A stretch of DNA of 64,000 nt, from the IMG/VR virus record IMGVR_UViG_3300044638_006750, positions 62,001 through 126,000 of that record; one strand, 5' to 3'. Positions 1 to 49,063 of the stretch are shown here, piece after piece. Below the pieces are notes generated by a model, which worked only from the letters and a program-made list of their open reading frames with translations, ran no database searches and was not told the origin of the DNA. The stretch's first letter is position 1. Every line of letters begins with the position of its first letter. The translations under genes and the position numbers were made by a program.

Positions 1-2
1 AA

Positions 3-17475: not shown

Positions 17476-17954
17476 TGTCGAGCTTTAAATTTTTAAGAGA
17501 CGAAACAACTACAAACCCTCCAGCGCCAGATCAGATCGAGGTTGGTCAATTAGCGATCAGTTCTGTTACCGGTATAATATATATGAAATTAACTAATGGT
17601 GTGATTGTAAAATATTTGCCGGTCTTTGCTTCTGCTTCTACAGTGCCACAAATTACATTTAGTGATTTTTCTACTTTCTGTTGCACGGGAGATACTTTGA
17701 CTGCTACAGTATCTAATTTAACCGTTGGGGAAAGCTATACTTATGAATTTGTGGATTTAAATAATAATGGAGTAGAATTTACAGGAGATATTACTGGATC
17801 TTTGACGCCCACGTCGTCTAGTAGTCGTGATGTCAGTATTATATTAAGTATGGATGGACCAGAGAGTGTTACTCTAATAAAATTTATAGTCAAACTCAAC
17901 AATGTTATTGTTGCAGAAAATATAGCTTCTATATGCTGTAGAGCTTGTTCATAA
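17475..17954 (+). CDS. Small structural protein with an Mtd-N/hyaluronidase-N-like motif and one Cys-capped module A
   Basis: TAATG overlap with the previous gene. PAPDQIEVGQLAISSVTGIIYMK resembles the P...L..GELAIN...GKLF.K fibre N-terminal motif. Ends in ICCRACS. Confidence 0.7.
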   Translation: MSSFKFLRDETTTNPPAPDQIEVGQLAISSVTGIIYMKLTNGVIVKYLPVFASASTVPQITFSDFSTFCCTGDTLTATVSNLTVGESYTYEFVDLNNNGVEFTGDITGSLTPTSSSSRDVSIILSMDGPESVTLIKFIVKLNNVIVAENIASICCRACS

Positions 17955-17966
17955 TAGGAATAAAAT

Positions 17967-18908
17967 ATGCCAAAAGTTTTCAACTATACGATTAGTAAAT
18001 GCATAGATGGAATAGTTATACCATTTAGTGGCATACCTTTATCTGTTAATGAAACATATGCAGTCACTTTTAGTCATCAAGGATCGACCCCTAGTGGATC
18101 TATTATCCTCAATCCGAGCGGATATGCGTATACTCCAAGTTCCACAGGCAGCAATATCTATACCACTGCCCAAATTAGCGGAGTACTTGATTTAGCAAGT
18201 TCTCATTTAATTAAACTATCTATTACAAAAAATGGTACCAATATATATACAGACTTTGCTTCTATAGAATGCGGAGAATTGTGTATTACTCAAACACCAA
18301 CATATACTCCAACTGGAACACCGACTCCGACACCACCAGAAACACCAACTAATACTCCCACACAAACATCAACACCAACTCCAACCAGTACTACAACACC
18401 GACACCGACCAATACAGTTACTAATAGTCCTACTCCGTCAGAAACAGCTACTAATACGCCTACTCCCACACAAACCCCAACAAACACTCCAACCAACAGT
18501 CCAACCAATACAATTACTCCTTCTCAGACATCTACCAATACTCCGACTCCATCTATCACGCCCAGTAATACAGAGACGCCTCTACCGAAGCCGGTCGATT
18601 TCTCTCTTAGTTTTCCTGAGCATATTATTGATCTCGAATGCTGCTCTTCTCCAAAACTAATCAATGTAGCCTTAAGTGGTCAATTAAATAATGAATACTC
18701 TTATACATTTAGTAGTATTGATAATCCTGATTATGTAGTTTTTGATAATCCTAGTGGTATAGTATTTTTATCAGAACCTACAATGAATATTTATACTAAT
18801 ATTCAAATTCTAAGTGATACAGTTGAAAGCCTTATTAAGTGTCGTATTTTTGATGGATTTAATAATATCGATTCTATGGCAGTAGTAAGGTGCAATAATG
18901 AGAAATAA
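17967..18908 (+). CDS. Structural protein: module A - Pro/Thr linker - module A (313 aa)
   Basis: SD AGGA. PT tract at about 18288-18580, flanked by two Cys-capped beta-rich modules. Confidence 0.8.
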
Positions 18909-18918
18909 CATCTTGAAC

Positions 18919-18928
18919 AGTGTATTAA
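18919..18928 (+). promoter_or_regulatory. Candidate late-promoter motif AGTGTATTAA
   Basis: The identical 10-mer occurs in the intergenic gap at 26271-26280. Lies 40 nt upstream of ATG 18968. Confidence 0.35.
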
Positions 18929-18967
18929 TTACTAAGAGGACAGTCGTACCATTAATAGGCCATAAAA

Positions 18968-19708
18968 ATGAACGATAATAATCTATCTATAGATTTTGAT
19001 TTTAGCCACTATTTTGATGCTGATACATTTGATATTAACAATAAAATTGTAGAGCTAACTACAGATCAGGTAAAATGTAAAAGAATTATAGTATCAGTTA
19101 TTGCAAATGGATTAGAGCTTGGCAGACAATATACAGTACAATATTCTCTCAAAAATCTAGACGATAACATATTTACCCCAGCAACTGAAACATTTTTTGC
19201 ATCCAAGACCACACAAAAATTCTCTACTGTGGCAACTATCAATGATAGTCAAGTATATATCATGAATGTACTTATCACGAGAACAGGATCTCCAACATCT
19301 GCATCAGATATGGTGACGGTAAAATGTGGTTCAATTATAAATTGTCCAGCTGTACCAGTACCTATTGTTTTGTCTGAATATGTTCGTTTTAGCAATAGAC
19401 CACTGCTAACGGTTGCAAGTCCATACAGGTGTGATGCACAAGTAAATATAGAAGCAGATATAAATAATGCAACTCTTGGAGAAAATTATACATATACATT
19501 TTCTTCCCTAGAAACTAATCCTAAAACCACCATATCCTTTGAGCCTGCTACTGGAGTTGTTTGTGCCGGAAGCGAGATACAAAATATCAATACAGTGGCT
19601 AAGTTTATTGGACAAAGCAATATATATTGTATTAAATTAGTAGTAGAAAATGAAAATGCTGAACAATTCGAAGATTATTTACTGGTTCAATGCGCTACAT
19701 GTAGCTAG
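18968..19708 (+). CDS. Structural protein with two module A copies (246 aa)
   Basis: Motifs GLELGRQYTVQY...FTPATETFFA and NATLGENYTYTF...FEPATGVVCA. Ends in VQCATCS. Confidence 0.8.
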   Translation: MNDNNLSIDFDFSHYFDADTFDINNKIVELTTDQVKCKRIIVSVIANGLELGRQYTVQYSLKNLDDNIFTPATETFFASKTTQKFSTVATINDSQVYIMNVLITRTGSPTSASDMVTVKCGSIINCPAVPVPIVLSEYVRFSNRPLLTVASPYRCDAQVNIEADINNATLGENYTYTFSSLETNPKTTISFEPATGVVCAGSEIQNINTVAKFIGQSNIYCIKLVVENENAEQFEDYLLVQCATCS

Positions 19709-19717
19709 GAATAAATA

Positions 19718-20365
19718 ATGTCAAAACTATCAATAAAATTCGACAATAGAAATCAAAAAGTAGATAACTACGAATGTTGTCCAAAAGGTATCATATTATC
19801 ATTTAAAATAGAGAATATGGTTCCGGGTGTTCAGTATAATTGCAATCTGAGCAATACTGGATCAGGAACAGCTGTTTTCAAACCCAATAACTTTAATATT
19901 ACTGGTACACAGATAGTAGAAAGTTTTATGGTGGTCGGAGAGCTAAAAGGGTCTAGAGTTCATGTAATTAAAGTTACAATAACAAACAATAATGATCCGA
20001 CAGACAAGGTTGAAGATATTATGACACTGGAGTGTGGACAACCTAAATTTGTTACAACATCCTTTGAACAAAATAATATTATTATAGATTGTGGAGGTCC
20101 TGACAATAGTTTGATAGGCAGGGCTTCTAATCTATTAATTGGAAATAGATATACATATAGTTTTACTCCATTGGATACTAGGGAAGTGGGCAATTTACAA
20201 TTTATGCCAGCTAGTGGTACTTTAATCGCTACTACAGAAAGCGAAAATATTAATACTTTAGTTCAATATACTGGAAGATCTAGATCAGTTATAGCCAAAT
20301 TAACGGTGACGGACTCATACAACAACTTTTCAGACAGCACGCTTGCCACATTAAAGTGTAAGTAA
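19718..20365 (+). CDS. Structural protein with two module A copies (215 aa)
   Basis: Motifs ECCPKGII...NMVPGVQY and NLLIGNRYTYSF...FMPASGTLIA. The SD overlaps the upstream TAG. Confidence 0.8.
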   Translation: MSKLSIKFDNRNQKVDNYECCPKGIILSFKIENMVPGVQYNCNLSNTGSGTAVFKPNNFNITGTQIVESFMVVGELKGSRVHVIKVTITNNNDPTDKVEDIMTLECGQPKFVTTSFEQNNIIIDCGGPDNSLIGRASNLLIGNRYTYSFTPLDTREVGNLQFMPASGTLIATTESENINTLVQYTGRSRSVIAKLTVTDSYNNFSDSTLATLKCK

Positions 20366-20374
20366 GGGGAATAA

Positions 20375-22675
20375 ATGTTAAGTTTACAATTTACAAAATC
20401 AATTATACAAACTAATAATCCAGATGTCTGCTCATTAGGAGTAGAAATCTTTTTAAATATTAGTGGTTTAATACCTGGACACAGTTATTCTCTAAATTTT
20501 GTCAAGATCACCGAAGATGGTATTGCTAGTTTTGATCCTCCTTCTGAAACTTTTGTCGCAAATTCTACAGCGATTGGTAATTTTCTGGTTAAAGTAGTAT
20601 GTCAGGATGCTCGATACTATATTTTCAATGCTTCTTTAGTCGATTTGTCTACAGAAGAAACCGTAGAAGATAACATTACTCTTGACTGCGGAGGCATACC
20701 TCCAGGTATCACTCCAACTCCAACCAATACTCCCACACCTACAAATACCCCAAGTGTTACTCCTACTACTACTCCGACCACAACAGTAACGTCTACAGTT
20801 ACTAATACTCCGACGAATACCGGAACGCCTACCTCCACGCCGACACCAACTGCTACCAATACTCAAACGCCAACCAATACTGTCACCAATACAGCAACCC
20901 CTTCACAAACACCAACTAATACTCCAACTCCAACACAGACACCAACGATTAGTATTACTCCTACACAGACAACAACAAATACTCCAACTATATCTGTGAG
21001 CCCCACAAATACACAAACACCAACAAATACTGCTACTCCTACACAAACGCCAACTAATAGTCCGACTAATACAACTACCCCAACGAATAGTGCAACTCCT
21101 ACTAACACCAAAACTCCCACAACCACACCAACAAATACCTCAACACCCACTCAATCTAATACTCCAACTATTACAGCATCTCAAACTGCTACTCCAACGA
21201 CAACCTTAACTCCTACAAATACAACATCTATTACTCCAACACCTAGTCCAACCAATTATCCTTTGGACGAATGTATTGGTACGGATAAACCAGCCTACTA
21301 TCTAGGATGCTGCACAAACAATAAGCTGATTTCTCCACACCACAGGATTCAGATTGTATTTGTTAACCTAAATATTGGAAATAGATACTTTTTTGACATT
21401 GTTGGAACAGATAATGTTAAAGTATATAATACTGAAGATAATTTTGTGGCTCAATATTATGAATATCTTACTACAGCATTTATTGCGGTTAAGACGGAAT
21501 TTTGTGAATTAAATTACTTAACTATCAATTTGTATGATGAAAATAGAAACTTGGTCAAGACAAGATCGGTCTCAGTATCTTGCGAGTCTGACCAGAATCA
21601 AAATGTAAATGATTGTCAAGGATCTTCTGTATTCTTTATAAATGAACCAGAAAATAGGAATATTTGTTTCTATTTTGATGATGAATGTCGTAAAATTATC
21701 AATGTTACTCCTACTCCTTCACCAACAAATACTGCTACTCCCACGACTACTCCAACATCGACTCCAACTCAAACATCGACTCCAACTCCAACGAATACAC
21801 AGACCCCAACTAATACTATAACTCCCAGTACTACCACAACCAATACTCCTACTCCAAGCGTAACCAGTACAAACACTCCAACCCCAACAACTACTACAAC
21901 CACAACTCCAACGGCAACTGTTACCAGTAGCCCCACAGCAACTAATACTCCTACTCCAAGTTTGGTTAATAGATGCGCTGCGAGAAGTTATTTACTGGTA
22001 AAAGTCGCAACAACAGAAAATTTAGGATATACTAATCTATCTGGTAGTTTTAGATCAGCAATTATGACTGGATTTAGAACTCCATTAACTATTGATGGTA
22101 TAATATTAAATGTTGGTGATTTAGTTTTAGTCAAGAATAATATAAGTAGTACTTGGACAGGATCAGATGTTTATACCGTACAGAATGTAGGAAGTCAATT
22201 CGCACCATGGGTTTTAATATCCTATGTTCCAACCTCTGGAGATTGGTGTACAACATTCTCTGACAATATAGGTGGTACAGAAGACAAGTATTGTCCTGTT
22301 TTTGTGCAACAAGGAAATACTAACGGTAAGACAGAATGGTTACTACCAACTAATTTCTCCACACAGGGCGCGATTCCATCAGCTTTAAGGTGTGTAGACG
22401 ATGTAATTATTAGACAGGTCAGATTAGCTACAACATCTAATATAACACTATCTGGTACTCCAGTTATAGATGGTGTTCAAACGGCAGAAAACGATAGAAT
22501 TCTAGTCAAAGATCAAGATGATCCTATACAAAATGGTATATATATTGTAGCAGGCAATAATACCGCATGGTATAGATCTGGTGATGTTAGAGATAATTTA
22601 AGCTTAATTACAGAACTTAGAGTATATGTGTCACAGGGTATCGTTAATAAAGACACTGTTTGGACTATAGGTTAA
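20375..22675 (+). CDS. Fibre-like protein (766 aa): module A, long PT linker, module A, PT linker, two phage fibre domains
   Basis: The C-terminal part has two copies of the common phage motif VR(V/L)ATT.N(I/L).LSG...IDG....GD(R/L)(I/V)LVK(D/N). Confidence 0.8.
20710..21252 (+). repeat. Pro/Thr-rich linker (TPTNTPT-like), about 180 aa
   Basis: Translation is almost entirely T/P/N/S. The DNA is synonymously scrambled rather than an exact tandem repeat. Confidence 0.9.
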
Positions 22676-22696
22676 ATAAATAAGGGGTTTTAAGAT

Positions 22697-24823
22697 ATGG
22701 TAAAACAGGTACAAATCGGAAAAGATCAATTACGTTTTTCAAAACATGAAAACTCTGGTATAAATTGTCAGCCATGCCAGACCCCAACACCAACACCCAC
22801 AGTGGCATGTATTACTGTAAACCTTAAGAGCAACATCTCCTGCAATAATTATACCATCAAAGACTGTCTCAAATCAGTGTCTACTGATAAATTAACTTCT
22901 TTAACAAAGCTTGCAGATAATCAGCTGGTTTTAGCTGGTTATGGATCATGTCTATCTATAAGTGATACTTTGCCGTTATCTAGAGGCATGGTAGGAAAGA
23001 TAGATCTACAAACTGTTCAACAATCAGACAACAAAACAGTTACATATTTTGCTGTAGATAATGACTTTGGTAGTAAGGGCAAAGTCAACAGTGTATTTTA
23101 CAACTCAAACAACCTCAAGGTTTCTGCAAAATTTGATCACGTTACCACTCAAACAGTTTCTGGTCAAATTAAAATATTGGCGGCTGGTCAAACAGACTAT
23201 AAGGCTTTAATTGCTCGATATTCAGTAAGCGGTGTTTTAGATAGAACATTTGGAAATGGTTCCGGCTATGTTAATATTGATACTATTGCAGAGTCCATTA
23301 AACTATTAGATGTATTTGGTCTGCATATCCAAACAGATAATCGTATTTTATTATTCTGTAATGGTTATGACATTATCAACAAACGATCAATTGGTGTTAT
23401 TCTTAGATTAACTAATTCTGGCAATATTGATGCCACATTTAATAATAACAAAGGATATTTATCTCTCAGATCAGATTTATCAGAATTTGATGGTAGCAGA
23501 TTTATTGGCAAGGATGTATATAGTTACAATAATTCTTTATATATTGTATTCGAAACATTTTCTTCGATAACGCAAAATACTGTAATAGTAGCTGAATATG
23601 ATTTGTCAGAAGGTAATTTAGTTTCATCATTTGGAAATAATGGATATGTATATGCTAACACTGACAAAAAAAATACATATTTCCAGAATATTCTTGTCAA
23701 AGACAATATGATATATCTTGTAATTAATAATAATAATACTAGTATTCAAATCAATAAATACTCGATGAATGGTGTTGTTGGCAACAGCACAGAAAATGTG
23801 GTTATCGCAAATAATATTTTTAATATATCAGACATTAATAATACTGTCGGATCACTAACTGTAAAATTTTCTAATATTAGATGCAATTATTTAGATTTAG
23901 GTACAGAATTTATTTTATTTTTGAATGTTTCTATAGAGAATGATCCATTCAATCAACTAGGAGGATCACGACAGTCTCTTCTACACTGGCTAGAACAACA
24001 GTCCTTAATTAGTGGTAATTTTGATTATTCTGGGTTAGAGTACAGAGATTGTACAATTGTACCCTGTGACAGACAGCCAGAAGATAGCTATGGAACAATA
24101 AAAGTTAATTCACAAAATATTACCAAACATAATACGTCCTCTAGAATACTCTTCGGATATGTTAAACTCTCTAACGATCTAAAAACTGTTTCGGCATTAA
24201 AACTAGATAGGTTTAGTGCTCTAGACGAACACAATATCGTAAGACGAGTAATAGAGATAGAGAATGGCAAGTATGCTATAGCTGGATATTATGGTAACAA
24301 CACATACTCTAATTTTGCCATAAAAACAATTACTACAACTTCGGATACTACGTCTTTTGGACCTAGACTTAACGAGATAATAGGCTCAATAGACTTTAGT
24401 GATTTTTGCAATACAACAATAGCTACAGATGATGGGATAGTTGTTGAAGAATGCCCTTGTGCTCCAGCACCCTCTCCGACGCCAACACCCACACCTCCTC
24501 CGGTTACGAGCGATATTTTTATAGATGCTATTACAGATAGTTGCGATAATCAAGCTCCAACAGTAAATATTTCATGGAAGAAAAATAAAGAGTCTTTGTC
24601 TGGATCATATGTTGTACAAATTTCACAAGCATCAGACAAGACAGAACTTATTGCTGCATCCTTTAATGTTGTAGAAGATAGCACAACTGGCACTGTTGAT
24701 ATTAATGTTACAGATATAGACAGGAAACTGAATAATAAAACATGTATAGCTTCGATTTTAGACAGTACTGGATCGTCTGTATTTAGTAAAATCTTTGTTC
24801 TCAATATCAGAAATTGTACATAA
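22697..24823 (+). CDS. Structural protein with delta-60 (DUF5122-like) beta-propeller repeats (708 aa)
   Basis: ILAAG...LIARYSVSGVLDRTFGNGSGYV, IQTDNRILL, ILRLTNSGNIDATFNNNKG and EYDLSEGNLVSSFGNNG match the RL...G.LD.TFG..G delta-60 consensus. Confidence 0.72.
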   Translation: MVKQVQIGKDQLRFSKHENSGINCQPCQTPTPTPTVACITVNLKSNISCNNYTIKDCLKSVSTDKLTSLTKLADNQLVLAGYGSCLSISDTLPLSRGMVGKIDLQTVQQSDNKTVTYFAVDNDFGSKGKVNSVFYNSNNLKVSAKFDHVTTQTVSGQIKILAAGQTDYKALIARYSVSGVLDRTFGNGSGYVNIDTIAESIKLLDVFGLHIQTDNRILLFCNGYDIINKRSIGVILRLTNSGNIDATFNNNKGYLSLRSDLSEFDGSRFIGKDVYSYNNSLYIVFETFSSITQNTVIVAEYDLSEGNLVSSFGNNGYVYANTDKKNTYFQNILVKDNMIYLVINNNNTSIQINKYSMNGVVGNSTENVVIANNIFNISDINNTVGSLTVKFSNIRCNYLDLGTEFILFLNVSIENDPFNQLGGSRQSLLHWLEQQSLISGNFDYSGLEYRDCTIVPCDRQPEDSYGTIKVNSQNITKHNTSSRILFGYVKLSNDLKTVSALKLDRFSALDEHNIVRRVIEIENGKYAIAGYYGNNTYSNFAIKTITTTSDTTSFGPRLNEIIGSIDFSDFCNTTIATDDGIVVEECPCAPAPSPTPTPTPPPVTSDIFIDAITDSCDNQAPTVNISWKKNKESLSGSYVVQISQASDKTELIAASFNVVEDSTTGTVDINVTDIDRKLNNKTCIASILDSTGSSVFSKIFVLNIRNCT

Positions 24824-24832
24824 GGTAGTATC

Positions 24833-26269
24833 ATGGAAAAAATTAAGTTTAAAAATAACACACTCAATACTGTCATTGTTCCGGATAGATTTACCCTAAA
24901 AGGGTATTCTGTAGAAGCTATATATGTACATAATCCGGTAGCTAATGCTCCATGTAGTGGTGGACACACATGCGACAGAGCAAGATTTAATGTGCTGATC
25001 AATAATGTTGTGGTCTTAGAAGCTAATTTAAACAATAAGACAGAAAACTCAGACGGTACAGAAAGACCCGATCACCCGATAGCACCACCTGCACCATTGA
25101 TGTCTGATGGTATAGGATCAGATCCGATGGATAGATACTCTATTAATATAATATCAGAATCTATGGCTAATGAAATAGCCAATAATGATCCTCTGAACTA
25201 TACAATTAATATTTTCCCCCATCCTACCAACACTGATCCTCACACAGATATTACATGGGTGAGAATCAAAGATCCAGAAGAAAATATTGTTTATAGTAGT
25301 TGTTCTGCTGCTGGACAAGCAGTATCAGTTACAGAAGCTATTCTAGCTAGTCTGGGAGCTATCAAAAGACTAGAATGTCTTGATAAAGTTGTTCTCGAAT
25401 TCGATATTACAGACATGACGCCCTCATCTGAATATGCTATTAAATATAGAGTTTTAGATATACAATCATTAAATACAATACCTCTTAATGAAAAAACATA
25501 TATATTCTCGAACCCATGCTGCTCTAACAGAATAGGAACAGAATATTTAAATGGATTTATGATTACGCCAACATCTAGAAATCTTAGTTGCCAAGTCGAA
25601 ATGAGTTTGAGATGTACTCAGTCGGCTCTAATAGAGATTTCATTGCTCAAAAATAATACAACAATCAGTAGAGATATTGCTCAGATTATTTGTCCAGTAT
25701 GTAGATTAGAGACATCTTTCAATCAGCCAATTATAGATAATCCAGTACTCAAAAATATTAATAAAAATTTTACTATTCGTTTTAATAATTTAAGTTCATT
25801 AGGAACTCAGATTAATCAATCAACGGCTTTTGGAAACTCAGAGGACGTTCCAATAATTATACAAAATAATACTAAATACTTAGATACCCCTATTAGTCTA
25901 TTAGCAGATAATCTGACTCTTAATGGATATTATGAATATAAATTTCATATGATACCAAATAATTCACCAATTAATATCGAACCTTTATCTGACAGATTTT
26001 TTGCCGGTAGTTCGCAACAGATAGTCACAGCAATGTTTAATATGACAAGTAATCAGATATCAATACTATATGCTTCATTAAAAGACTTAGAAACTGGTAT
26101 TGTACGAAATAGTTCATTAATATATCTTGTAAATATCAATAATTGTACAGAATTACCAAAAAATATTGAGCTAGTAGAATATCCTCAAAATATATCTACG
26201 GAATCTGGCCTAGAGCTTGGAGAGGAGTGCGACCTGACAAAATTGGCAGGAGGTTGTATCTTGCAGTAA
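24833..26269 (+). CDS. Structural protein (478 aa) with an N-terminal C-x-GGH-x-C domain and divergent module A copies
   Basis: Contains VEAIYVHN...PCSGGHTCDRARFNVLINN, then module A-like segments ending IICPVC and INNC. Confidence 0.75.
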   Translation: MEKIKFKNNTLNTVIVPDRFTLKGYSVEAIYVHNPVANAPCSGGHTCDRARFNVLINNVVVLEANLNNKTENSDGTERPDHPIAPPAPLMSDGIGSDPMDRYSINIISESMANEIANNDPLNYTINIFPHPTNTDPHTDITWVRIKDPEENIVYSSCSAAGQAVSVTEAILASLGAIKRLECLDKVVLEFDITDMTPSSEYAIKYRVLDIQSLNTIPLNEKTYIFSNPCCSNRIGTEYLNGFMITPTSRNLSCQVEMSLRCTQSALIEISLLKNNTTISRDIAQIICPVCRLETSFNQPIIDNPVLKNINKNFTIRFNNLSSLGTQINQSTAFGNSEDVPIIIQNNTKYLDTPISLLADNLTLNGYYEYKFHMIPNNSPINIEPLSDRFFAGSSQQIVTAMFNMTSNQISILYASLKDLETGIVRNSSLIYLVNINNCTELPKNIELVEYPQNISTESGLELGEECDLTKLAGGCILQ

Positions 26270-26270
26270 T

Positions 26271-26280
26271 AGTGTATTAA
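26271..26280 (+). promoter_or_regulatory. Candidate late-promoter motif AGTGTATTAA
   Basis: Intergenic, 20 nt upstream of ATG 26300. Identical to 18919-18928. Confidence 0.35.
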
Positions 26281-26299
26281 AGAATAAAGAGACCCTACT

Positions 26300-26776
26300 A
26301 TGCTTAATAATTTACTACTCAAAGTGTCATTATCAGACGGTTGTGCGGTTGCACAGGATATGTTGACCATAATATGTCCTACTAGCACCCCTACGCCCAC
26401 AGTTACCACAACCCCAACATTGACACCAACAACTACACCCACACCAACACCACTACCTATTGATCAGGTGGCCTATTTCCTTAACCAGACCAATAATTAT
26501 GTTTATACTGTTTCTGGTAATATAGTTGCCAGATTTGCCACCACAAATACTGATGTGTCTGATGTTAGTATTAAGTTGCCAATTGTTCAAACTAGTAGTC
26601 CTAATATTTTGACACCAATTACTATTATTTATCAGAATGTCGTTATTGGACAATTACAAATTGACCCATCTCGCATATTTATTGGCACACCCATAGACAT
26701 AACATTCGCCCTATCCAACGTCGTCTATCAATATACAAATGTTGTTATAACGTCCCCAGCAATCAATTTGAGCTAG
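26300..26776 (+). CDS. Small structural protein with a short PT linker (158 aa)
   Basis: Begins with the C-terminal half of a module A (LLKVSLSDGCAVAQDMLTIIC), followed by a PT tract. No clear SD. Confidence 0.65.
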   Translation: MLNNLLLKVSLSDGCAVAQDMLTIICPTSTPTPTVTTTPTLTPTTTPTPTPLPIDQVAYFLNQTNNYVYTVSGNIVARFATTNTDVSDVSIKLPIVQTSSPNILTPITIIYQNVVIGQLQIDPSRIFIGTPIDITFALSNVVYQYTNVVITSPAINLS

Positions 26777-26788
26777 GAGTTTAAATAA

Positions 26789-27871
26789 ATGATAATCACA
26801 ACCAGGTTTTTTATATTTACGTATTTGGGCAAAGATCCCCTGACGTTATTGACTCCTCCGGCTAATATGTCCTCAGATCAAACTGCTCAATATAATAATT
26901 TTATTCAAAATGTTGATTCTATTTATACATCTCAAAATACTGCTGGTATTATTCCTACTTTCTATAAAACTAATGGTGTTGGAGACAAAAATTCTACATT
27001 GACCCAATTGGAAACCAATAAGGCTTATTATGCCATCATGAGATCAACAGCAACATATCCTGTTTTTATACCGGCTATAGGTGGTTTGGTACAGGGTAGC
27101 GGAGCCACCGGATGTAGCGTCAGCCAGATTCCAATAATATCGTTTCCGGCCCCGTCATTCGTTTTGGAAGGAGAAAATCAAAATTATCAATATTTAACAA
27201 TCAATATTTCTCAATTACTTCCTGGCACTAAATATCAATACAAATTAAGCAATTTCCAGTCCAACTGGCCAGTTAAAATTCTACCCAAAGAAGGCATCAT
27301 CACTCCTCAGAGTACAAGTCAAAATATTAATGCCTATTTGATGTTTGCCCCCTCTTTAGATACAACAGACTGCCCAGACTGCTTCACTAATTATGTACTA
27401 GACCCTGACTATAAAGAAAATTATGGACAAAATAATCTTTATGCTATTCTACAAGTTTCTGTTGTGGCAGAACCATTTGATGCTTGTGTACCAATAGTTC
27501 AGTCTATACCAATAAGATGTAAATCTTGTCTACCCAGAAGAGTAGTAAATTATCCATCTGTCAAATTTACCAATGGTCCAAAGATTTCTTTATCTGGGAC
27601 TTGTGGAGATCAGGCGTTTCCGATTACTGTTGATGCTAGAAATTTTGATAAAGGAAAACCATATAAATATACTTTTAGTGTTGATAATGATAGCTCTATT
27701 ATAACTCCAGCTAGTGGTGTTGTTGGTTTTGGAGACGGCGTTGGACAAATTAGCGCCCTTGTTAATATAAAAAATGTATCACCAATAGTGGCAAAGATTG
27801 AGGTAGTATCTCAAGACGGTATGAACAAAACATCTACGGATTTTATAACTATAGAATGTAGTAACTGCTAA
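26789..27871 (+). CDS. Structural protein with two module A copies (360 aa)
   Basis: Motifs QLLPGTKYQYKL...ILPKEGII and NFDKGKPYKYTF...ITPASGVV. Ends in IECSNC. SD AGGAG. Confidence 0.8.
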   Translation: MIITTRFFIFTYLGKDPLTLLTPPANMSSDQTAQYNNFIQNVDSIYTSQNTAGIIPTFYKTNGVGDKNSTLTQLETNKAYYAIMRSTATYPVFIPAIGGLVQGSGATGCSVSQIPIISFPAPSFVLEGENQNYQYLTINISQLLPGTKYQYKLSNFQSNWPVKILPKEGIITPQSTSQNINAYLMFAPSLDTTDCPDCFTNYVLDPDYKENYGQNNLYAILQVSVVAEPFDACVPIVQSIPIRCKSCLPRRVVNYPSVKFTNGPKISLSGTCGDQAFPITVDARNFDKGKPYKYTFSVDNDSSIITPASGVVGFGDGVGQISALVNIKNVSPIVAKIEVVSQDGMNKTSTDFITIECSNC

Positions 27872-27882
27872 GAGGATAAAGC

Positions 27883-30800
27883 ATGGCGATATATGTTAAA
27901 GGATATAATCCCTGGAATAATCCACAGATATACGGCAGTTTTGGAGACACAAGTTGTGGACAATATCTAGGCGCTGGTGGTATCTATAATGTAACAGCCT
28001 CGTCTTTATTTTATCATAACACTTTTGCTCCAGAGTCTATTGATATTAGCACTGGGGTACAGTCATTTAGCTCTTGTTATACAAATCCGATGGCTGCTGG
28101 TTATAATAATTCTCCAGATTCATGTCCACCATATGTAGGGTCTTATGCCATAGTAGATAATAATGGGGACGTCTATCTACATGCTCCCAAGCATTATGTT
28201 TATGCTGGTCAGTTTGATGCTAATCCTTATCAAACTATGTTTAATAAGTTTGCTTCTTGGCCAAAGCTTGCAGATAAAAAATGGCAAAAAGTTATATTAA
28301 CTCCATTCTCTCTTCATGCCCTTACAACAACTGGACAGTTATGGACTATTATCAACAACAATGTCTATCAAAGTCTTTCTCAGAGTAGTCTAGAGGCATA
28401 TAGTGGTTTAGGTTTAGCATACAGAAGAAGAGTTCCAACTATTTTCGGTAGTATAGCTGGTGGTGATACTTTTATCAGTAGAACATATCCTATGTATGAT
28501 CGTCCATTATCATCGGTATTTAGTTATGCAAATACTATAGATATTTATAGCCCACAAAGAATCGCTTTGTTTGGACCGGAATATAGGAAGACAATTGGAG
28601 ATGGTAATCAAGGAACACTTACGACCATACTTAACGCTAAGGCTGGCATATCTTCATGTTCAAATGGACCTAGTTGGAGATTTAACGATGGTGGTAATTA
28701 TGCTAAAATTTTAGATATGTATAATTCAGTTTACATTTCTTCTCATAGTAGTGTTGCTAATGATGGTAGAACTAATTATACCTCTCCAGGAGATAATCAG
28801 CACAGATCATATACTGTTCCTAGTCCTTATTATACTGATTGGCCCAATATCAGGTCTGGTTCACCAACCTGTGTTCCTGCAAGTAGCGGCAATTGGTTAA
28901 CAAGAATTACTTTAGAAGGTTCTATAGCAGATAATTGGAAAGATATATATCATGTCCATGGATGTTTTTATGGGATCAATACTCTAAACCAAGTTTATGT
29001 TTGGGGTCCAAACGTCCCTACTCTCGGAGTAGTAGACTATCCTAGATTAACGACCTTGGGCGCAGACGGAGGATTAAGGAATATACAAGGAGGATCTACT
29101 GGCCCAGGCTACTCAGCATATACAGCATATGGCATAGACGGTAATGATGATCTAAAATTATGGACCGATATTTCATTAACGCCTGTAACTGTTTATGGTT
29201 CATTTAAAAAAGTTATAGCTGTAAATTCTCTTATGGGCTATAAAAGTGCAGCAAATGGTTTTTTCATAGCTTTAACCAAAACAAATGAAATAGTATTATT
29301 ATACAACATATCATATAATCCAGGTATTGCATTCGATAGTAATCTGAGACCAGCACATAGTTTATCTACCATACCACTAGCATCAACACGAGGAGCGACA
29401 TGGACAGATATTGCTCTAAGTGCTCCGTGGTTTGGATCCGGATCGGGTGTTAGTATAGACGCTATTAGGAGCGACGGTACGGTATTCAATATCTCTGGTA
29501 TTACTACGACATTTGCTGGTATAGTAACACAGCTATCTAATCAACTATCTGCAAATTCATATTTTGCAATGACATCTAACGATGAATTTAGTCAAACCTA
29601 TGCAAATTATTCTGGCTCAAGTATCTTTTCAAATTCTTTAAGTAATATTAATAATACTACTACGAAATATATTACATTCCCCAATGTAGTATATAGCGAT
29701 ACCAATTCATTGATTCCCACACCAACTCCAACCGTAACAAGTACAAGCACACCACCTCCAACACCAACAGCTACTCCAACTAGAACTCCTCCTCCAACCC
29801 AAACTACGACGAATACTTCTACAGTATCTGTTACTCCTACTCAAACACCAACCGGAACAACTACATCAACACCAACCAATACCACAACTCCAACTGTTAC
29901 GCCGACCACAACTCCTACTGCTACCAATACAAGAACACCAACCAATACTTCCACTCCGACTAATACTACAACTCCGACTAATACTCCCACAATCAGTCAA
30001 ACACCAACCAACACCCCCACCATTAGTTTGACACCAACTAATACCGTCACAAGCAGCACTACACCAACTAATACTGCTACTAATACACAAACCCCAACTA
30101 ATACTGTTACGTCTACTATCACTAGCACTCCGACACGTACACAATGTTATTTTACCGACGTTATAAAAAATCCCAGTTTTGAAAATAATGATACTAAAAT
30201 ATTAGATAATTGGGATTATTATAATGTTTATGTATTAGGTGGGCCACAATTAACTGCCGGCTACCTCGGTGGTCAAGGAGGAGTAGGACCAATAAACGAT
30301 GGTAAATATGCTGTTAGTTTAACAGGAAATGCAAATGGCTGGATAAGTCAGGCATTCTATACCAATGTTGGAGATGCGTATGCTATACGCTTCAAATATA
30401 CTGGAAATCCAGGCAACACTAACACACCCAATAATGTATTGAAAACATTAAGAGTCGGTATTGGAGAAAATGATAAATCTATAAATTGGTCTAATGTTAG
30501 TGATAGAGATAATATTAATCCAATATCTTCTACAATGCAAGTGACAGACTTCTCGTTCTCTGCTTCATCTTATCCTTCTCATAGCTTAACAAATTTACAA
30601 TGGGAAGACGGAATCATAACATACACAGCAACGTCCGAATTAACTAGAGTTGTTTTTCAGGATTTATCTACAAGTGTCGATGGTAATGATGGAATCATAA
30701 TAGATAACATCATATCATGTGGTGCTCAATATATAACAAAAACTCCAACGCCAACTTTTACGAATACTCCAACCAATACTCCCACTCAAACAGCAACAGC

Positions 30801-33174: not shown

Positions 33175-33185
33175 GAGAATTATAG

Positions 33186-39100: not shown

Positions 39101-39845
39101 TATTACTACGACTAGAACACCAACAGTAACGCCAACTACTAGTAATACGCCAACAAAAACTCCAACATGTACGGGAACTTCGACACCAACTAATACTGCT
39201 ACACCAACAAATACAGTTACAAATAGTGCTACCCCAACAAACACTCCAACTCCAACCCTTACAGGAACTGCAACCGTTACGCCCACAATTACAAATACTC
39301 CCACCAACACATCTACTCCGACCAACACTCCAACAAAAACTGTTACTAGAACCCCAACTAATACTCCTACAAATACCGTTACTCCTAGTGCTACGAGTAC
39401 TCAGACTCCTACATCTACTATAACAAATACTCCAACAAATAGTGCTACTCCAACTAATACGCCTACCATGACCCCAACACGCACTATGACATTAACACCA
39501 AGTAATTCACCTACACCAACAGTTACTCCATCAACAAGTCCACTACTGACAGTATTTTTCTACTATATCTCTGAAGACCAAACAGATATATGCAATAATA
39601 AAGAGGCTAATACTGTTAGAGTGATAAGTGTATACGATAGAGACAATAATCTACAAAGCGGATCTTTCTTATACAAAGATAAAAATGCCAACAATAAGTG
39701 GGAATTTGACGATTTACAAACGATACTAAATACCAGTGCTTCTATAATATACATGCTAGAATTAAATTCTAATAAACTATCAACACTTATTGCAGATAAT
39801 AGTGGTTATGCTATAATAGATCAACAGGACATCAGCTGCTCTTAA
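33186..39845 (+). CDS. Giant multi-lectin fibre/adhesin protein (2219 aa): two LecA/PA-IL-like domains, LamG, split DUF642, two YVTN propellers, RCC1 repeats, PT linkers, module B
   Basis: LecA-like SLLGRIG...FRVG...GRLYL..ED...DNSGQF. Lam[10 protein letters not shown]...WYNLVITRE...FIDGV...[15 protein letters not shown] blades [19 protein letters not shown]1 [28 protein letters not shown]. Confidence 0.85.
39055..39540 (+). repeat. Pro/Thr-rich linker in 33186..39845
   Basis: Direct translation. Confidence 0.9.
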
Positions 39846-39860
39846 ATAGTAGAATAAATA

Positions 39861-41924
39861 ATGATATACAATATAAATACTACACAATATAATCTATGTC
39901 ACACAATAACAGTTACAACTGTGGATATAGATGTTACAGATCTCAGCGTCGGCAGCTATTTGTATAAAACCACAAAATTGCCATGGCTATGGACAGAATT
40001 AAAAGCTATTAGTGGAAGTTTTTCAACCGCTAAAAGCTTTTATTTAAACGAGTCTAATAATACGACTATTACCTTACAAGTTAAAGAAGACTTAACAAAT
40101 GGATATGCATTAATTATAGAAATTAATTCAACGTGTCCTACACAAACTCCTACTCCATCTATTACATCATCCAATACTCCTACACCCACCAATAGTCCAA
40201 CTCCGACGAATACTCGCACTCCTACACAAACTCCGACAGTTACTCCAAGTTCTCCTCTTAATAGGTATTTATACTATATTTCTTCTAATCTGGAAGATGT
40301 TTGCTATAACAGATCCTCATCTATAGTAAATCCTATAAGTTTATATGATAGAAACACAATTTTAGAAGTTGGGTCTTTTATCTATAAAAATGCTTCTGCT
40401 TCTAGTAGATGGTTATTTACTGAGCTTCTATCAAGACTCGGAGTATCTGTTTCAAAACTATATCTTATTCAGAGTTCTACGGGTTTGGTTTATAGTATTG
40501 TGTCCGGCACTGGAGGCTTTGCTGTTGTTGATTCCGATAATATACAGTGTCCATCTATGCAGATGTCAGATGAGACATATTTATTATGTCATACAAACTC
40601 ATACGTTAATATACAGATAAGCACAAAAAGCCTGACTATTGGTAATTATATTTACAAAAATAATGGCATAGACTATTGGACATGGACAGAGCTTGTAGCT
40701 CTTGACCCCTCTTTTTCTGGAGCTATTAAATTATTTCTAAAAAGAAATACATATATTATTCGTATAGAACAAGATATTGCTACAGATTATGCTGTCATTA
40801 CCAATACGACTACCATTTGCCCTACTCAAACGCCAACTCCTACAAAAACTAGTACTCCTACTATAAGTTTGAGTCCTAGTCCAACAATAACTCCGTCAGT
40901 TAGCAATACTCCGACTCCTAGTATTACTCTAACCAGAACGCCAACAAACACCCCTACTCCTTCACATTCTGCAACACCGACACCAACAGCTACGGATCCA
41001 CTGAATGGTGTTTATTATTATTTATCTAATGACCCATATAATTTATGTCATAATAATCCATCTACAATTGTTTTAGTATATGATAATGATGGTATACTAA
41101 ATATTGGAGAAATATTATATGAAACTTCTAATGCTTTAAATATATGGTTATATAGTGAGTTATTATCTAAGCTAGGAATACAATCTGCAAGTAATTTATA
41201 TATAAGAAGACAGGTAGGAACAACAACAACAGTATATACTCTTGAAGAAAATCAAGATGGCGAATCAGAAATTGTAGATATTCAGATTTGTGTTACCACT
41301 ACACCCACTCCTACGAATACTCCAACGGTAACTCCGACTAATACTTCTACAGAGACTCCTACTCCAACTAATACCGCCACTATAACGAACACCGCTACTC
41401 CTAGCGAAACACCTACAAATACTCCGACCCCAACTAATACTCCTACTCCAACAGAAACCCCAACCTGTACGCCTACGACAACCAACACTGAAACACCAAC
41501 GTCTACTCCAAGTCAAACACCAACAAATACAAATACTCCCAGCGAAACGCCGACGAATACTCCGACTCCTACAAATACGATTACAACAACACCAACAACC
41601 ACGGCGACAGCGACAACAACGATTACGCCTTCTCCAACGGCTGTTTATATTTACAAAGCTATTAATATGAAGATTAATCGTGTTATTATTGGACATCAGT
41701 ATCGAGTTGAATTATCTACAGATGATATTGGTTTGGGTAAAGTAGAACCTTCCACGATTACGTTTACAGGAACGTCTGATCCTCAAAATATAGCTTTTAA
41801 AATAGGTTTTTCAGCAGCCTTAGCCACGATTATTCTTAATGCCAAAGTAACAGATCTGGATACTGGCCTAATAGAATACAATACTGTGTTCATTAAGTGT
41901 AATGAAATACAGGATTGTTATTAA
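39861..41924 (+). CDS. Structural protein (687 aa): four module B copies, PT linkers, C-terminal module A
   Basis: Repeated LC(H/Y)...L.(V/I)G..(L/I)YK....W.(W/F)(T/S)EL...C units. Ends in IKCNEIQDCY. Confidence 0.8.
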   Translation: MIYNINTTQYNLCHTITVTTVDIDVTDLSVGSYLYKTTKLPWLWTELKAISGSFSTAKSFYLNESNNTTITLQVKEDLTNGYALIIEINSTCPTQTPTPSITSSNTPTPTNSPTPTNTRTPTQTPTVTPSSPLNRYLYYISSNLEDVCYNRSSSIVNPISLYDRNTILEVGSFIYKNASASSRWLFTELLSRLGVSVSKLYLIQSSTGLVYSIVSGTGGFAVVDSDNIQCPSMQMSDETYLLCHTNSYVNIQISTKSLTIGNYIYKNNGIDYWTWTELVALDPSFSGAIKLFLKRNTYIIRIEQDIATDYAVITNTTTICPTQTPTPTKTSTPTISLSPSPTITPSVSNTPTPSITLTRTPTNTPTPSHSATPTPTATDPLNGVYYYLSNDPYNLCHNNPSTIVLVYDNDGILNIGEILYETSNALNIWLYSELLSKLGIQSASNLYIRRQVGTTTTVYTLEENQDGESEIVDIQICVTTTPTPTNTPTVTPTNTSTETPTPTNTATITNTATPSETPTNTPTPTNTPTPTETPTCTPTTTNTETPTSTPSQTPTNTNTPSETPTNTPTPTNTITTTPTTTATATTTITPSPTAVYIYKAINMKINRVIIGHQYRVELSTDDIGLGKVEPSTITFTGTSDPQNIAFKIGFSAALATIILNAKVTDLDTGLIEYNTVFIKCNEIQDCY
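41295..41640 (+). repeat. Pro/Thr/Glu-rich linker in 39861..41924
   Basis: Direct translation. Confidence 0.9.
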
Positions 41925-41938
41925 ACAGGGGACTAATT

Positions 41939-42163
41939 ATGGCCATTCAAAACATAGGATTAAACGACATAGTAGACAGGATTATACTCAGTAGTGCTAA
42001 TACCAACGAAACTTCCTCAATAGACAGGAAGAACGGTATTTTTAATACAGCATCCTATTTCCTTTTCTCGATTAATAAACCAGCCTTTGCTATAGAAATT
42101 GCTAATAAAATTGATCCATTAGAATCTAGTCCATCTAGGGACTCACAACCGTTATCCACTTAA
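41939..42163 (+). CDS. Small hypothetical protein (74 aa)
   Basis: SD AGGGGA at about 41927 precedes ATG 41939, which is preferred over the 41915 start. Fills the gap between two long genes. Confidence 0.55.
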   Translation: MAIQNIGLNDIVDRIILSSANTNETSSIDRKNGIFNTASYFLFSINKPAFAIEIANKIDPLESSPSRDSQPLST

Positions 42164-42164
42164 T

Positions 42165-44885: not shown

Positions 44886-44896
44886 GATAATTAACT

Positions 44897-47800: not shown

Positions 47801-48166
47801 GCAAGTCCCACTAATACTAGGACGCCGACTCCTACTATTAGTGAAACGCCGACATTAACTCCTACAATAAGTCAAACCCCAACAACAACCACTACTACAA
47901 CTCCAACAGGAACCCCACAACCTACTCCAACAAGAACTCCTACTAGAACGGTTTCTGCTACTCCTACTAATACTAGAACGCCTACCCCGACACCTACACA
48001 TACTCAGACTCAAACTCCGAGTAACAGTCCTACTCCAAGAAATTCTTGGGATATTGACGGACAGCAAATTGTCTTTACGGATGCAGAAAGAAATTCTGTG
48101 GATCTTAGTTGCAAGTGTATAGCAGAAGAGACCCTTGCCAGAGAGGGTAGGTCTGATGGTGTATAA
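44897..48166 (+). CDS. Beta-propeller/RCC1-repeat structural protein with a C-terminal PT linker (1089 aa)
   Basis: N-terminal propeller blades (VYAGEVLAGGDF, YNGKLYIFGNF) and RCC1-like VAVLTTSGEIYIWGKNSYGQLG. PT tract at about 47698-48040. Confidence 0.78.
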   Translation: MALVDAVADNSLVYIISNSRQNLHVLNTRNQIDDINLDGLAETVTISGKPYAAKRIYSVIVYAGEVLAGGDFGLKRWNVGSRKWERYATFTGGISSLVDKGLFPNSVLSMKTYNGKLYIFGNFVDSLIGSTPSAVTSRYIVVYNGSFFEPVNGANTLPIINLSAYGLLSKSSVNPALNDNIFSLYIYNNNIYILDKGIFNGKSTLQDVVKADALTDVANDGTTLVYCLLDGATTFSTRKINGQILNDYQIDSTLYITSAVKKSGSQYQQNLFSSIDLNTSDITRGYEVFLGTTYASVTGDIFTNYNVEGNSTTSAISNKATRFLKQNNVKFRKIHNGISIQNGTYEQTKAAILIDTNNNLWALKSQWVETNSSAAYYVPLSQEISYQAFVQYNLDYGPLTLNGRIVDAVMGLDTVAVLTTSGEIYIWGKNSYGQLGPDIPLGSIIDSPVKVAGNGYKKLYVCDNTYYAIKDDNTLYAWGQSTTDLGGQLIPGVVGNALLPTQIEIAIGTNDTPINRTGSSVVSDQMGSFWKSISLSPVGIYGIDITGLLYYWGGPEGTSAYPITRTVSGNSEKHTGLFDIENIKPIPAPSAPGNPVLLGCPAFVNDETPIIGDPGQYIDISHDSCWYNHNYVFNFSIQSNTTGVPSTVFSLTQKSINADLIHVSSFVTYTYVLNDKTYTTYWHKNLLNDETGDNSVGKINTSAWVKTANVSSYIISLPIPQAKTLATGNIYELNLNTNNHKQLLIKFRFNNKPYWTINSLSGISTLGSVNTLSGLGLTNIRLCAIDAASALRIDTGSPVRYDYLTRNKKWDSTNEYYAIDDDGELYGLPYSGYPGVSNKYPFVLPYKYYITKDNSFTGSTSLFDINNSYISDILIDNNRLIIAGSIPNGNSFYSYKSLAIYDLEQSSVVNLTIDTTSAINTVINKILPQSDWVQPPPPPTPTPTPTQTPTTSLTPSNTPTISLSPTNTASPTNTRTPTPTISETPTLTPTISQTPTTTTTTTPTGTPQPTPTRTPTRTVSATPTNTRTPTPTPTHTQTQTPSNSPTPRNSWDIDGQQIVFTDAERNSVDLSCKCIAEETLAREGRSDGV
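47698..48040 (+). repeat. Pro/Thr-rich linker in 44897..48166
   Basis: Direct translation. Confidence 0.9.
48158..48166 (+). promoter_or_regulatory. Candidate late-promoter motif GGTGTATAA
   Basis: Variant of GTGTAT(T)AA overlapping the stop codon, 31 nt upstream of ATG 48197. Confidence 0.25.
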
Positions 48167-48196
48167 CAGTATATTGACATTATAAGGAATATAAAT

Positions 48197-49063
48197 ATGG
48201 CTAATTTCAAAGTTAATTTCGTCACCAGTGGCAAAGTCATCAACTTTACAGATTGTTGCTGTCCAAATCTTATCAATGTTGTCTGTAGAGACATGGAGAT
48301 GGGACAAAAATATTATGTAACTTTTCAGGATACACCAACTTATAGAGCCCAAATTTTTCCATCTAAATACTCGTTCATCGCTGAATCTCGCGTAGTTGGC
48401 TTTAAGGTTATCAATGGAGGACTCGGTTTTACTTCAACACCAACAGTAGAAATTGTGGGTGGTGGAGCATCCACGGTTGCTACCGCTACTGCTGTTGTGT
48501 CAGAAAAATCTTTTCCTAATGATACCAAGGTCAAAACTATTACAGATATTATTTTGACCAATGGAGGTAAAGGATATACAAGTATGCCAACGGTTAATAT
48601 CGTTGGAGGGGGTGGACGAGGAGCCATAATAAAACCGATATTGAGCACACCTGTTAAAAATTTAACATTTTTTGTTGCTTTTGGATGCAACGATAAAAAT
48701 ATGCCAATACCAACACCATATCCCAGTAACACTCCTACGATTACACCAACTGCTACTCTTACTCAAACTCCTACACTTACTCCAACACCAACTTCTATAG
48801 CTCTAGAAATATTGCCAGCTAATGTTTCAACGTACTCCTCCGCATTGACAGAAAATCCTATAGCTTTAGATGATTATTTTGCGGACAGATCAACATATCC
48901 TGTGAGAGTATATTTGGGTGTTACAGGACAGAGTATTGTAGTGCCAACTGGTTATGATTATGCTATATATATTAAGCCAGATGGCAGTATTACGGATGGC
49001 GCTGTTATTGCTGGCACCAGTATCAAATTTAAGAGTCAAATTTTATTAGGCAAGGGTATATAA
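48197..49063 (+). CDS. Structural protein (288 aa): module A interrupted by two NGGxGYTSxPTV repeats
   Basis: TDCCCPNLINV...MEMGQKYYVTF...IFPSKYSFIAES, then INGGLGFTSTPTVEIVGGG / TNGGKGYTSMPTVNIVGGGG, then STPVKNLTF. Confidence 0.75.
   Translation: MANFKVNFVTSGKVINFTDCCCPNLINVVCRDMEMGQKYYVTFQDTPTYRAQIFPSKYSFIAESRVVGFKVINGGLGFTSTPTVEIVGGGASTVATATAVVSEKSFPNDTKVKTITDIILTNGGKGYTSMPTVNIVGGGGRGAIIKPILSTPVKNLTFFVAFGCNDKNMPIPTPYPSNTPTITPTATLTQTPTLTPTPTSIALEILPANVSTYSSALTENPIALDDYFADRSTYPVRVYLGVTGQSIVVPTGYDYAIYIKPDGSITDGAVIAGTSIKFKSQILLGKGI

Follow-up and report, generated by a model that had tools for sequence, protein, structure and literature searches.

We analysed a stretch of 64,000 nucleotides (called the window throughout) corresponding to bases 62,001-126,000 of the single-contig virus record IMGVR_UViG_3300044638_006750, a genome of 232,683 bp with a G+C content of 35%, a CheckV completeness of 100% and the IMG/VR topology class linear. 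The window covers tail genes, upstream of which lie the portal gene and the gene for the large terminase (TerL), and includes a tape-measure gene, 3' of which follow approximately 65 kb of genes on the same strand. In the first half of this block lie genes encoding one or more copies of a domain that we refer to as module A. Judged by gene order, the tape-measure gene places the module A genes in a tail-distal gene block. By sequence comparison module A is a previously unannotated family, and very probably it is an immunoglobulin-like (Ig-like) domain family of tail-distal proteins.

Copies were located with a hidden Markov model (HMM) built from eight hand-cut seed copies (the copy in gene 17475, module 2 of gene 17967, and modules 1 and 2 of genes 18968, 19718 and 20375), with which we searched the six-frame translation of the window, comprising 275 stop-to-stop frames of 50 amino acids or more. 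The profile recovered non-seed copies with first-pass independent E values between 4.6e-8 and 0.014, the top non-gene frame having an E value of 0.18, and the iterated HMM returned the same set of copies with E values of 1e-15 to 1e-28. When the entire genome was scanned in six frames, module A was confined to window positions 17.6-48.5 kb. The copies are listed below together with the tape-measure gene; genes are named by their window positions, and the cysteine motifs at the N-side and C-side of a copy are given as its caps.

2020 to 14874, plus strand: tape-measure protein, 4284 amino acids; Pfam PF10145 PhageMin_Tail, E 1.1e-22, 81 bits against a cut-off of 33
17679 to 17951, plus strand: copy in gene 17475-17954 (residues 69-159); E 3e-24; caps CC ... 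CCRACS; 5/5 cysteines kept in orthologs
17997 to 18281, plus strand: copy 1 of gene 17967-18908, non-seed; E 4.6e-8, then 1e-18 iterated; caps KC ... CGELC
18639 to 18905, plus strand: copy 2 of gene 17967-18908, after a Pro/Thr linker of 107 residues; E 1e-24; caps CC ... C
19073 to 19333, plus strand: copy 1 of gene 18968-19708; E 8e-27; C37, C120 and C126; included in the structural model of the whole protein (mean confidence 84)
19427 to 19705, plus strand: copy 2 of gene 18968-19708; E 5e-28; C155, C242 and C245; modelled as a single domain (residues 132-246)
19775 to 20041, plus strand: copy 1 of gene 19718-20365; E 5e-25
20087 to 20362, plus strand: copy 2 of gene 19718-20365; E 6e-27; last residues of the protein CK
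20426 to 20695, plus strand: copy 1 of gene 20375-22675; E 3e-24
21308 to 21619, plus strand: copy 2 of gene 20375-22675, flanked by two Pro/Thr linkers; E 3e-15
24536 to 24820, plus strand: possible divergent copy at the C-terminus of gene 22697-24823; full-length alignment, E 0.1-0.6; caps DSC ... NCT, with both cap cysteines (C616 and C707) kept in orthologs
25373 to 25696, plus strand: weak divergent copy 1 of gene 24833-26269; E 2.2 in the first pass and 0.15 iterated, not significant alone
25877 to 26149, plus strand: copy 2 of gene 24833-26269; E 3e-4 in the first pass, 7e-19 iterated; lacks the N-side cysteine and ends in NINNC
26300 to 26386, plus strand: possible half copy at the N-terminus of gene 26300-26776, comprising the last two strands and the C-cap cysteine; E 1.4 (window profile) or 2e-4 (family profile, which scores the Pro/Thr linker too); C15 and C26 conserved in orthologs
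27179 to 27529, plus strand: long variant, copy 1 of gene 26789-27871; first-pass E 3e-5, N-terminal half E 7e-15; end CKSC; carries a Cys-rich insert of about 24 residues, on removal of which profile positions 7-74 align at E 1e-9
27599 to 27868, plus strand: copy 2 of gene 26789-27871; E 2.5e-6 in the first pass, 2e-21 iterated; protein end CSNC
41649 to 41921, plus strand: copy at the C-terminus of gene 39861-41924, after a Pro/Thr linker of 125 residues; E 1.7e-6, then 7e-22; end CNEIQDCY
48254 to 48412, plus strand: N-terminal half (CCC...) in gene 48197-49063; E 0.014, iterated 4e-15; profile positions 1-54 only

Thirteen of these copies are clear and full-length, one is weak (module 1 of gene 24833), one is an N-terminal half (gene 48197), and two are marginal, namely the full-length alignment at the C-terminus of gene 22697 and the half copy at the N-terminus of gene 26300; together they are spread over 9-11 genes. 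The original prediction, made from the letters of the window, had counted about 15 copies over 9-10 genes, and this is borne out by the significant E values with which the profile recovers copies outside the seed. Its proposed consensus also agrees with the profile of the wider family, in which the conserved positions are C2, N14, G18, Y21, Y23, F25, F36, P38, G41, A45, I52, T54, K68, D82, C88 and C91, and the C-terminal cysteine motifs that it named (CCRACS, CATCS, CK, CSNC, CNEIQDCY and NCT) were correctly read.

Pairwise identity among the copies in the window is only 15-29%. In two orthologous contigs (L001 and L003) the module proteins are 48-91% identical to those of the window, and the ratio of nonsynonymous to synonymous substitution rates (dN/dS) for the module genes against both loci is 0.04-0.35, with dS near saturation. 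At the level of sequence comparison this establishes that the module genes are real and under purifying selection. The low identity between copies, together with the much higher identity of the orthologs and the low dN/dS, indicates that the duplications are old and that each copy has been maintained.

Two of the partial copies are associated with unusual local arrangements. Around window positions 26150-26390 the C-terminus of gene 24833 resembles the first strands and the N-side cysteine of the module, and the half copy in gene 26300 follows with the module middle missing; the split and its four cysteines are kept in orthologs. It may be a deletion relic or a docking device between both proteins, and the half-modules might dock the two by completing one sandwich. 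Stop-codon read-through joining genes 24833 and 26300 was considered and rejected, as the two genes share a frame here and do not in the L001 or L003 orthologs. The module of gene 48197 is broken off after profile position ~55 by two GGxGY(T/S)xxPTVxIVGGG repeats (general form GG.G[FY]TS.PTV.IVGGG; window 48410-48650, residues 73-150), which, with an E value of 1e-13, match PHROGs whose annotation is virion structural, baseplate wedge or head closure protein. A related protein (P0087) carries dozens of these repeats behind an N-terminus that resembles that of the gene 18968 protein.

The modules had been described as unrecognised, and the profile searches agree. Ten module proteins had no Pfam match at E ≤ 1, and searching 12 excised modules up to E ≤ 10 brought up scattered single matches only, none of them coherent. 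Within these same limits there was no whole-domain membership of fn3 (PF00041), no match to Big_2, I-set, Big_3 or similar families, and none listed to PapD_N, Motile_Sperm, ASH or HYDIN_VesB_CFA65-like_Ig. No PHROG matched the modules, and a profile search of PDB sequences gave no family match, the only hits being local and marginal ones (E 0.02-0.1) to Fn3 domains of fibronectin, tenascin and titin. Such matches, along with faint ones to Pur_ac_phosph_N, fn3 and PhoD_N on long-variant proteins, are what would be seen if module A were an ordinary Fn3, PKD or Big_x domain missed by profile searches, with incidental cysteines. As a lead only, the language-model neighbours Big_9, PKD and Big_13 score 0.84-0.87.

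In order to establish the distribution of the family, we searched the module profile against 1.84 billion representative proteins and obtained 365 proteins at E ≤ 1e-3; among the 149 best representatives, 98 metagenome proteins contain a full-length module, and many of the others are large fn3, Big_9 or PKD arrays. Proteins of 3,700-4,500 amino acids with many partial matches were rejected as members; they are fn3, Big_9 and PKD arrays, one of them within a 7.8-Mb bacterial chromosome, whose weak multi-stretch matches to the module profile are due to a short L.PG..Y.Y.F motif. PF22544 was likewise seen only as a weak cross-match on an unrelated bacterial giant protein of planctomycete size. 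Genuine members are of two types, namely small proteins of one or two modules that are orthologous to window genes, and proteins of 360-1,300 amino acids in which 1-11 long-variant copies are followed by one or two standard modules, so that copy number among relatives ranges from 1 to ~11 per protein. In two of the latter (P0033 and P0036) the equivalent of gene 26789 has grown to 1,172-1,283 amino acids, with 9-11 tandem long-variant modules of ~130 residues and ~4-6 cysteines each ahead of the terminal standard modules, an arrangement suggestive of a fibre with a length that depends on module number. In 105 of the 136 proteins with a full-length module, the module lies at the protein end (within 12 residues).

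Neither megablast nor tblastn searches of a collection of cultured phages found relatives of the module genes or of a diverged member (P0039), which is encoded on a 189-kb contig next to a 4450-residue tape-measure gene, on its downstream side. One scan of prokaryote genomes with the alignment of gene 18968 orthologs gave no match, and scanning with that alignment recovered two IMG/VR contigs only. The nearest cultured relatives by TerL are Bacillus siphophages, at an identity of just 24%, and the phage therefore belongs to an undescribed lineage; our literature search found neither this lineage nor module A described.

We used AlphaFold2 to model the domain. The whole gene 18968 protein, modelled with 28 orthologs, forms two β-sandwiches with a mean predicted local distance difference test score (pLDDT) of 84, and its second domain (residues 132-246), modelled with 87 diverse family members, reaches a pLDDT of 91.5 and a predicted template modelling score (pTM) of 0.83, with nine strands. 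The structural unit comprises ~110 residues, in which two short strands, A and A', precede the ~90-residue core that runs from cysteine to cysteine; the domain thus starts ~20 residues ahead of the cysteine taken to be its N-terminal cap, and a φxφxF...φφφxφ..C pattern is also found ahead of the N-side cysteine in other copies. In the model, the N-side cysteine lies in the A'-B loop, between the second and third strands, and the C-cap cysteine ends strand G. The description of the module as Cys-capped therefore stands for the C-side and not for the N-side, where the cysteine is placed within the domain.

The closest structural matches are the PapD-like N-terminal domains of Caf1M, FaeE and FimC, with Z scores of 9.5-10.7 and a root-mean-square deviation of 2.5-2.8 Å over 97-104 residues; a ciliary ASH protein matched within the same ranges. 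The ASH/PapD-like domains of CEP192 and hydin and the MSP/VAP domains were matched with template modelling (TM) scores of 0.5-0.6 and E values of at least 1e-4. Matches in AFDB and Atlas were assorted Ig-like clusters, in Atlas including CARDB/NPCBM_assoc/DUF11, and viral structural matches were weak only. Identity to the structural neighbours does not exceed 17% (5-17%), and the superposition of the split A/A' sandwich on members of the PapD-like/ASH/MSP group holds at the level of fold only. The predicted fold of module A is thus the common Ig-like β-sandwich of PapD-like/ASH/MSP type, in an unrecognised sequence family. This supports the β-sandwich proposed in the original prediction, which had been worded as Ig- or Fn3-like. 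A tyrosine corner on strands E-F near the C-terminal end, as expected of Fn3, was not found: the Y.Y.F motif occupies profile positions 21-25 of 92, corresponding to a model strand at residues 42-49 of the 115-residue domain, with five strands after it.

The importance that the original prediction gave to the cysteines is strongly supported. In the nine window genes, 79 of 81 cysteines are kept in both L001 and L003, compared with 50% of the other residues (Fisher p ~1e-21 to 3e-21). Across 197 distinct full-length domain instances, cysteine is found at profile position 2 in 83% and at position 88 in 94%, and positions other than the caps are seldom cysteine. A further cysteine follows Cys88 within 13 residues in 140 of 186 instances (75%), in 134 of them 2-5 residues on. 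This conservation is not accompanied by a general abundance of the residue, as the cysteine content of the block is 1.35%, against 1.8% in the rest of the proteome, and the tape-measure protein has 0 cysteines. On the evidence of these alignments, the cysteines are the most constrained feature of module A and clearly functional.

With respect to what the cysteines do, the model offers one indication. When it is aligned to FimC (residues 138..246 to 1..119), strand A' is placed alongside strand G, over the C-terminal half of the latter; Cys155 lies six residues past A', and Cys242 stands at the end of G. Cys155 and Cys242 would therefore share one pole of the sandwich, where a bond between them is geometrically plausible. 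That the core pair, Cys2 and Cys88 in profile numbering, forms an intradomain disulfide is a tentative prediction of the model, for which we would put the odds slightly short of even.

Taken together, these observations suggest the following reading. Module A would be a repeated building block of at least nine predicted tail-distal proteins, often tethered by long Pro/Thr linkers and usually placed at the extreme C-terminus, and the modules may be exposed on tail-tip appendages, where they would have a structural or adhesive part in adsorption. A location in the virion is suggested by the position of the genes after the tape-measure gene and among tail-fibre-like genes. Once the virion is released by lysis into oxic water, Cys2 and Cys88 would form their intradomain disulfide, which would pin the C-terminal strand to the domain body as a covalent clamp and protect the domain from unfolding, pulling forces and proteolysis, while the third conserved cysteine would be free to make another bond, hold a metal or link chains. 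We assign a probability of roughly 55% to this reading as a whole, that is, to tail-tip adhesion or building modules each carrying a covalent disulfide clamp at one pole.

Several observations weigh against it. The proximity of Cys2 and Cys88 depends on the topology of the model. The commonest cap pattern is one N-side and two C-side cysteines (1+2; 73 of 197 instances), and the number of conserved cysteines is odd in seven of nine proteins, so that intradomain disulfides alone cannot use every conserved cysteine. Five orthologs lack the N-side cysteine of module 1 and retain both C-side cysteines, which means that Cys88 can function without Cys2. Cysteine counts on the two sides of the module do not co-vary, and no pairing scheme can be read from them. 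From the pattern of spare cysteines it follows that at least one conserved cysteine per module has another job, be it in a further local bond, as a metal ligand or in a bond between chains. In addition, the module proteins fold in a reducing cytoplasm. A thiol oxidoreductase elsewhere in the genome had been proposed as something to look for, and our search of the genome for the thioredoxin, glutaredoxin and DsbA families found no such protein; oxidation would therefore have to follow lysis. A search of the genome for Erv1 also gave no match, but its control was equally silent, which makes this negative uninformative. Directly after the structural block, a 144-residue protein (genome positions 129582-130016) contains 10 cysteines and three CxxC motifs; it matches DUF6171 at a sub-threshold level only (18.7 bits against 27) and no Pfam redox-enzyme family.

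It is possible, if unlikely, that the three or four cysteines at one pole of each module instead bind Zn or Fe in the reducing cytoplasm, the metal tying strand G to the A'-B loop. At least three cap cysteines are present in 76% of the 197 instances, but 27 instances have a 1+1 arrangement and 11 a 0+2 arrangement, which provide too few ligands. CxxC is the most frequent C-side spacing (55 cases), although spacings of 2, 3, 4 or 5 residues and longer ones all occur, unlike those of fixed zinc knuckles, and the CxxC tail is the part of the model with the lowest confidence (pLDDT ~65). Synthesis in a reducing compartment, in a genome where the thioredoxin, glutaredoxin and DsbA searches were negative, would suit a metal, as would the third cysteine being conserved as strongly as the other two; no conserved His or Asp is found, however, that would complete the triads. 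The canonical cysteine zinc site, with fixed knuckle spacing in all members, was not seen in this family, in which the caps range from 0+2 to 2+3.

Alternatively, the cap cysteines or the odd third cysteine could form inter-chain disulfides after lysis, with other module proteins or the large fibre proteins as partners, producing a covalent mesh at the tail tip; we consider this improbable as well. Inter-subunit disulfides cross-link the capsids of phages Qβ and PP7. The odd number of fully conserved cysteines in most of the proteins would leave a partner to be sought elsewhere, although two-module proteins could pair their spare cysteines within one chain just as well. In the model the third cysteine lies in a flexible tail or linker, many of the proteins have a cysteine motif 1-5 residues from the C-terminus, and an unrelated repeat of the same gene block (module B, described below) likewise begins and ends with cysteine, all of which would favour bonds between chains. 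The modules tethered by Pro/Thr linkers, on the other hand, resemble free-swinging units more than a lattice. A related and quite improbable proposal is that, through its conserved odd third cysteine, each module would act in thiol-disulfide exchange. The ~80 invariant cysteines of the tail-tip proteins would then, after lysis, link chains into a covalent network or serve as a switch triggered by redox state or force, at the tip of a tail with a predicted length of at least 0.6 µm. Lastly, that module A is an ordinary Fn3, PKD or Big_x domain is very improbable, given that 12 modules matched no Pfam family coherently, that L.PG..Y.Y.F falls on the third to fourth strand of the module instead of on E-F near the Fn3 end, a difference of register, that the structural neighbours are PapD-like/ASH/MSP domains and not Fn3, and that cysteines which are the most conserved residues are not incidental.

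The disulfide-clamped, tail-distal reading of module A can be set beside the other proteins of the block. Residues 681-765 of the gene 20375 protein match phrog_11518 (tail fiber protein) with an E value of 2e-19 and form a C-terminal domain of tail-fibre type. Neighbours include an 862-residue protein that is fibre-like (as a lead only), a putative DUF5122 propeller protein with a sub-threshold match, and four large proteins (906-2219 amino acids, window 27883-48166) with RCC1-type β-propellers; that of gene 33186 also contains a ConA-like lectin domain (Laminin_G_3), and gene 27883 has a weak, sub-threshold match to DUF642. Variability among orthologs is found in loops at both poles and does not single out one binding face. 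Pro/Thr linkers of 27-195 residues each, ~1,600 residues in total, occur in 11 tail-distal proteins. A second, unrelated repeat, module B, of ~75-90 residues (YY.S....LC...G..LYK....W.W.EL; E 1e-20 to 1e-30), is present in four copies in gene 39861 and in single copies at the C-terminal end of gene 33186 and in a 695-residue protein beyond the window; it also starts and ends with cysteine and stands beside Pro/Thr linkers.

Window 18270-18590, 20680-21270, 21690-21965, 29700-30075, 41280-41650 and others: Pro/Thr linkers between folded modules
Window 39558-39779, 39864-40073, 40269-40487, 40557-40760 and 41013-41231, and genome 128006-128260: module B

Orthologs of the tape-measure protein in related contigs are 4450-5711 amino acids long and also belong to PhageMin_Tail. 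Tail length follows tape-measure length at 1.5 Å per residue, and the lengths seen here (4284 amino acids) and in these relatives predict tails of ~0.64-0.86 µm, which to our knowledge are among the longest implied for any phage. The genome also encodes a complete one-piece transfer-messenger RNA (genome 217291-217643; Rfam RF00023, 120 bits; tag GANQLALAA), which points to a bacterial host, and 10 tRNAs (22115-29085 and 205108-205193), to one of which ARAGORN assigns a four-base anticodon (gaga).

With these results, a domain that accounts for much of the tail-distal region left unannotated in a whole clade of uncultured jumbo phages with tape-measure proteins of 4,300-5,700 amino acids can be named and delimited, and module A merits a Pfam or DUF entry. 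Should the cysteine clamp prove real, module A would clearly exemplify the hardening of a tailed phage's adsorption apparatus by post-lysis disulfide (or metal) chemistry, a question that can be tested on proteins of 160-250 amino acids that are expected to be easy to express. The C-terminal modules are furthermore candidate host-binding probes with which the host might be found.

Module A adds a new family to a known kind of domain, the Ig-like accessory domains of phage tails. Examples of these are T4 Hoc and the C-terminal domain of lambda gpV, and they serve in weak surface-glycan binding and in spacing; members of the Big_2, I-set and Fn3 families reportedly occur on phage tail, fibre and decoration proteins. 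Like them, module A is a small β-sandwich that is present in one or more copies, is often C-terminal, and appears dispensable and variable in number, and the known domains are thought to be weakly adhesive to carbohydrate. Unlike them, module A has no sequence match to Big_2, I-set or fn3, is of the PapD-like/ASH subtype and has a conserved cysteine triad, and some of its small proteins consist of one or two modules only. With Fn3 it has in common the short L.PG..Y.Y.[FV] motif and the marginal profile matches, whereas the motif has a different position, the match never extends over the whole domain and the model has another order of strands. The PapD-like/ASH/MSP superfamily provides the nearest structural neighbours and shares the split A/A' start; its members, which act as periplasmic chaperones or as modules in the eukaryotic cytoplasm, lack the cysteine pair of module A. 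In its mode of action module A may resemble the isopeptide- or ester-locked Ig domains of Gram-positive pilins and adhesins (Cpe0147, PDB 4mkm, which is also among the fold matches of the model), in which the last strand is covalently bonded to the beginning of the sandwich, yielding tandem surface modules that resist force and proteases. The bonds of those domains are Lys-Asn or Thr-Gln, whereas the putative bond of module A is Cys-Cys, and the two share no sequence relation.

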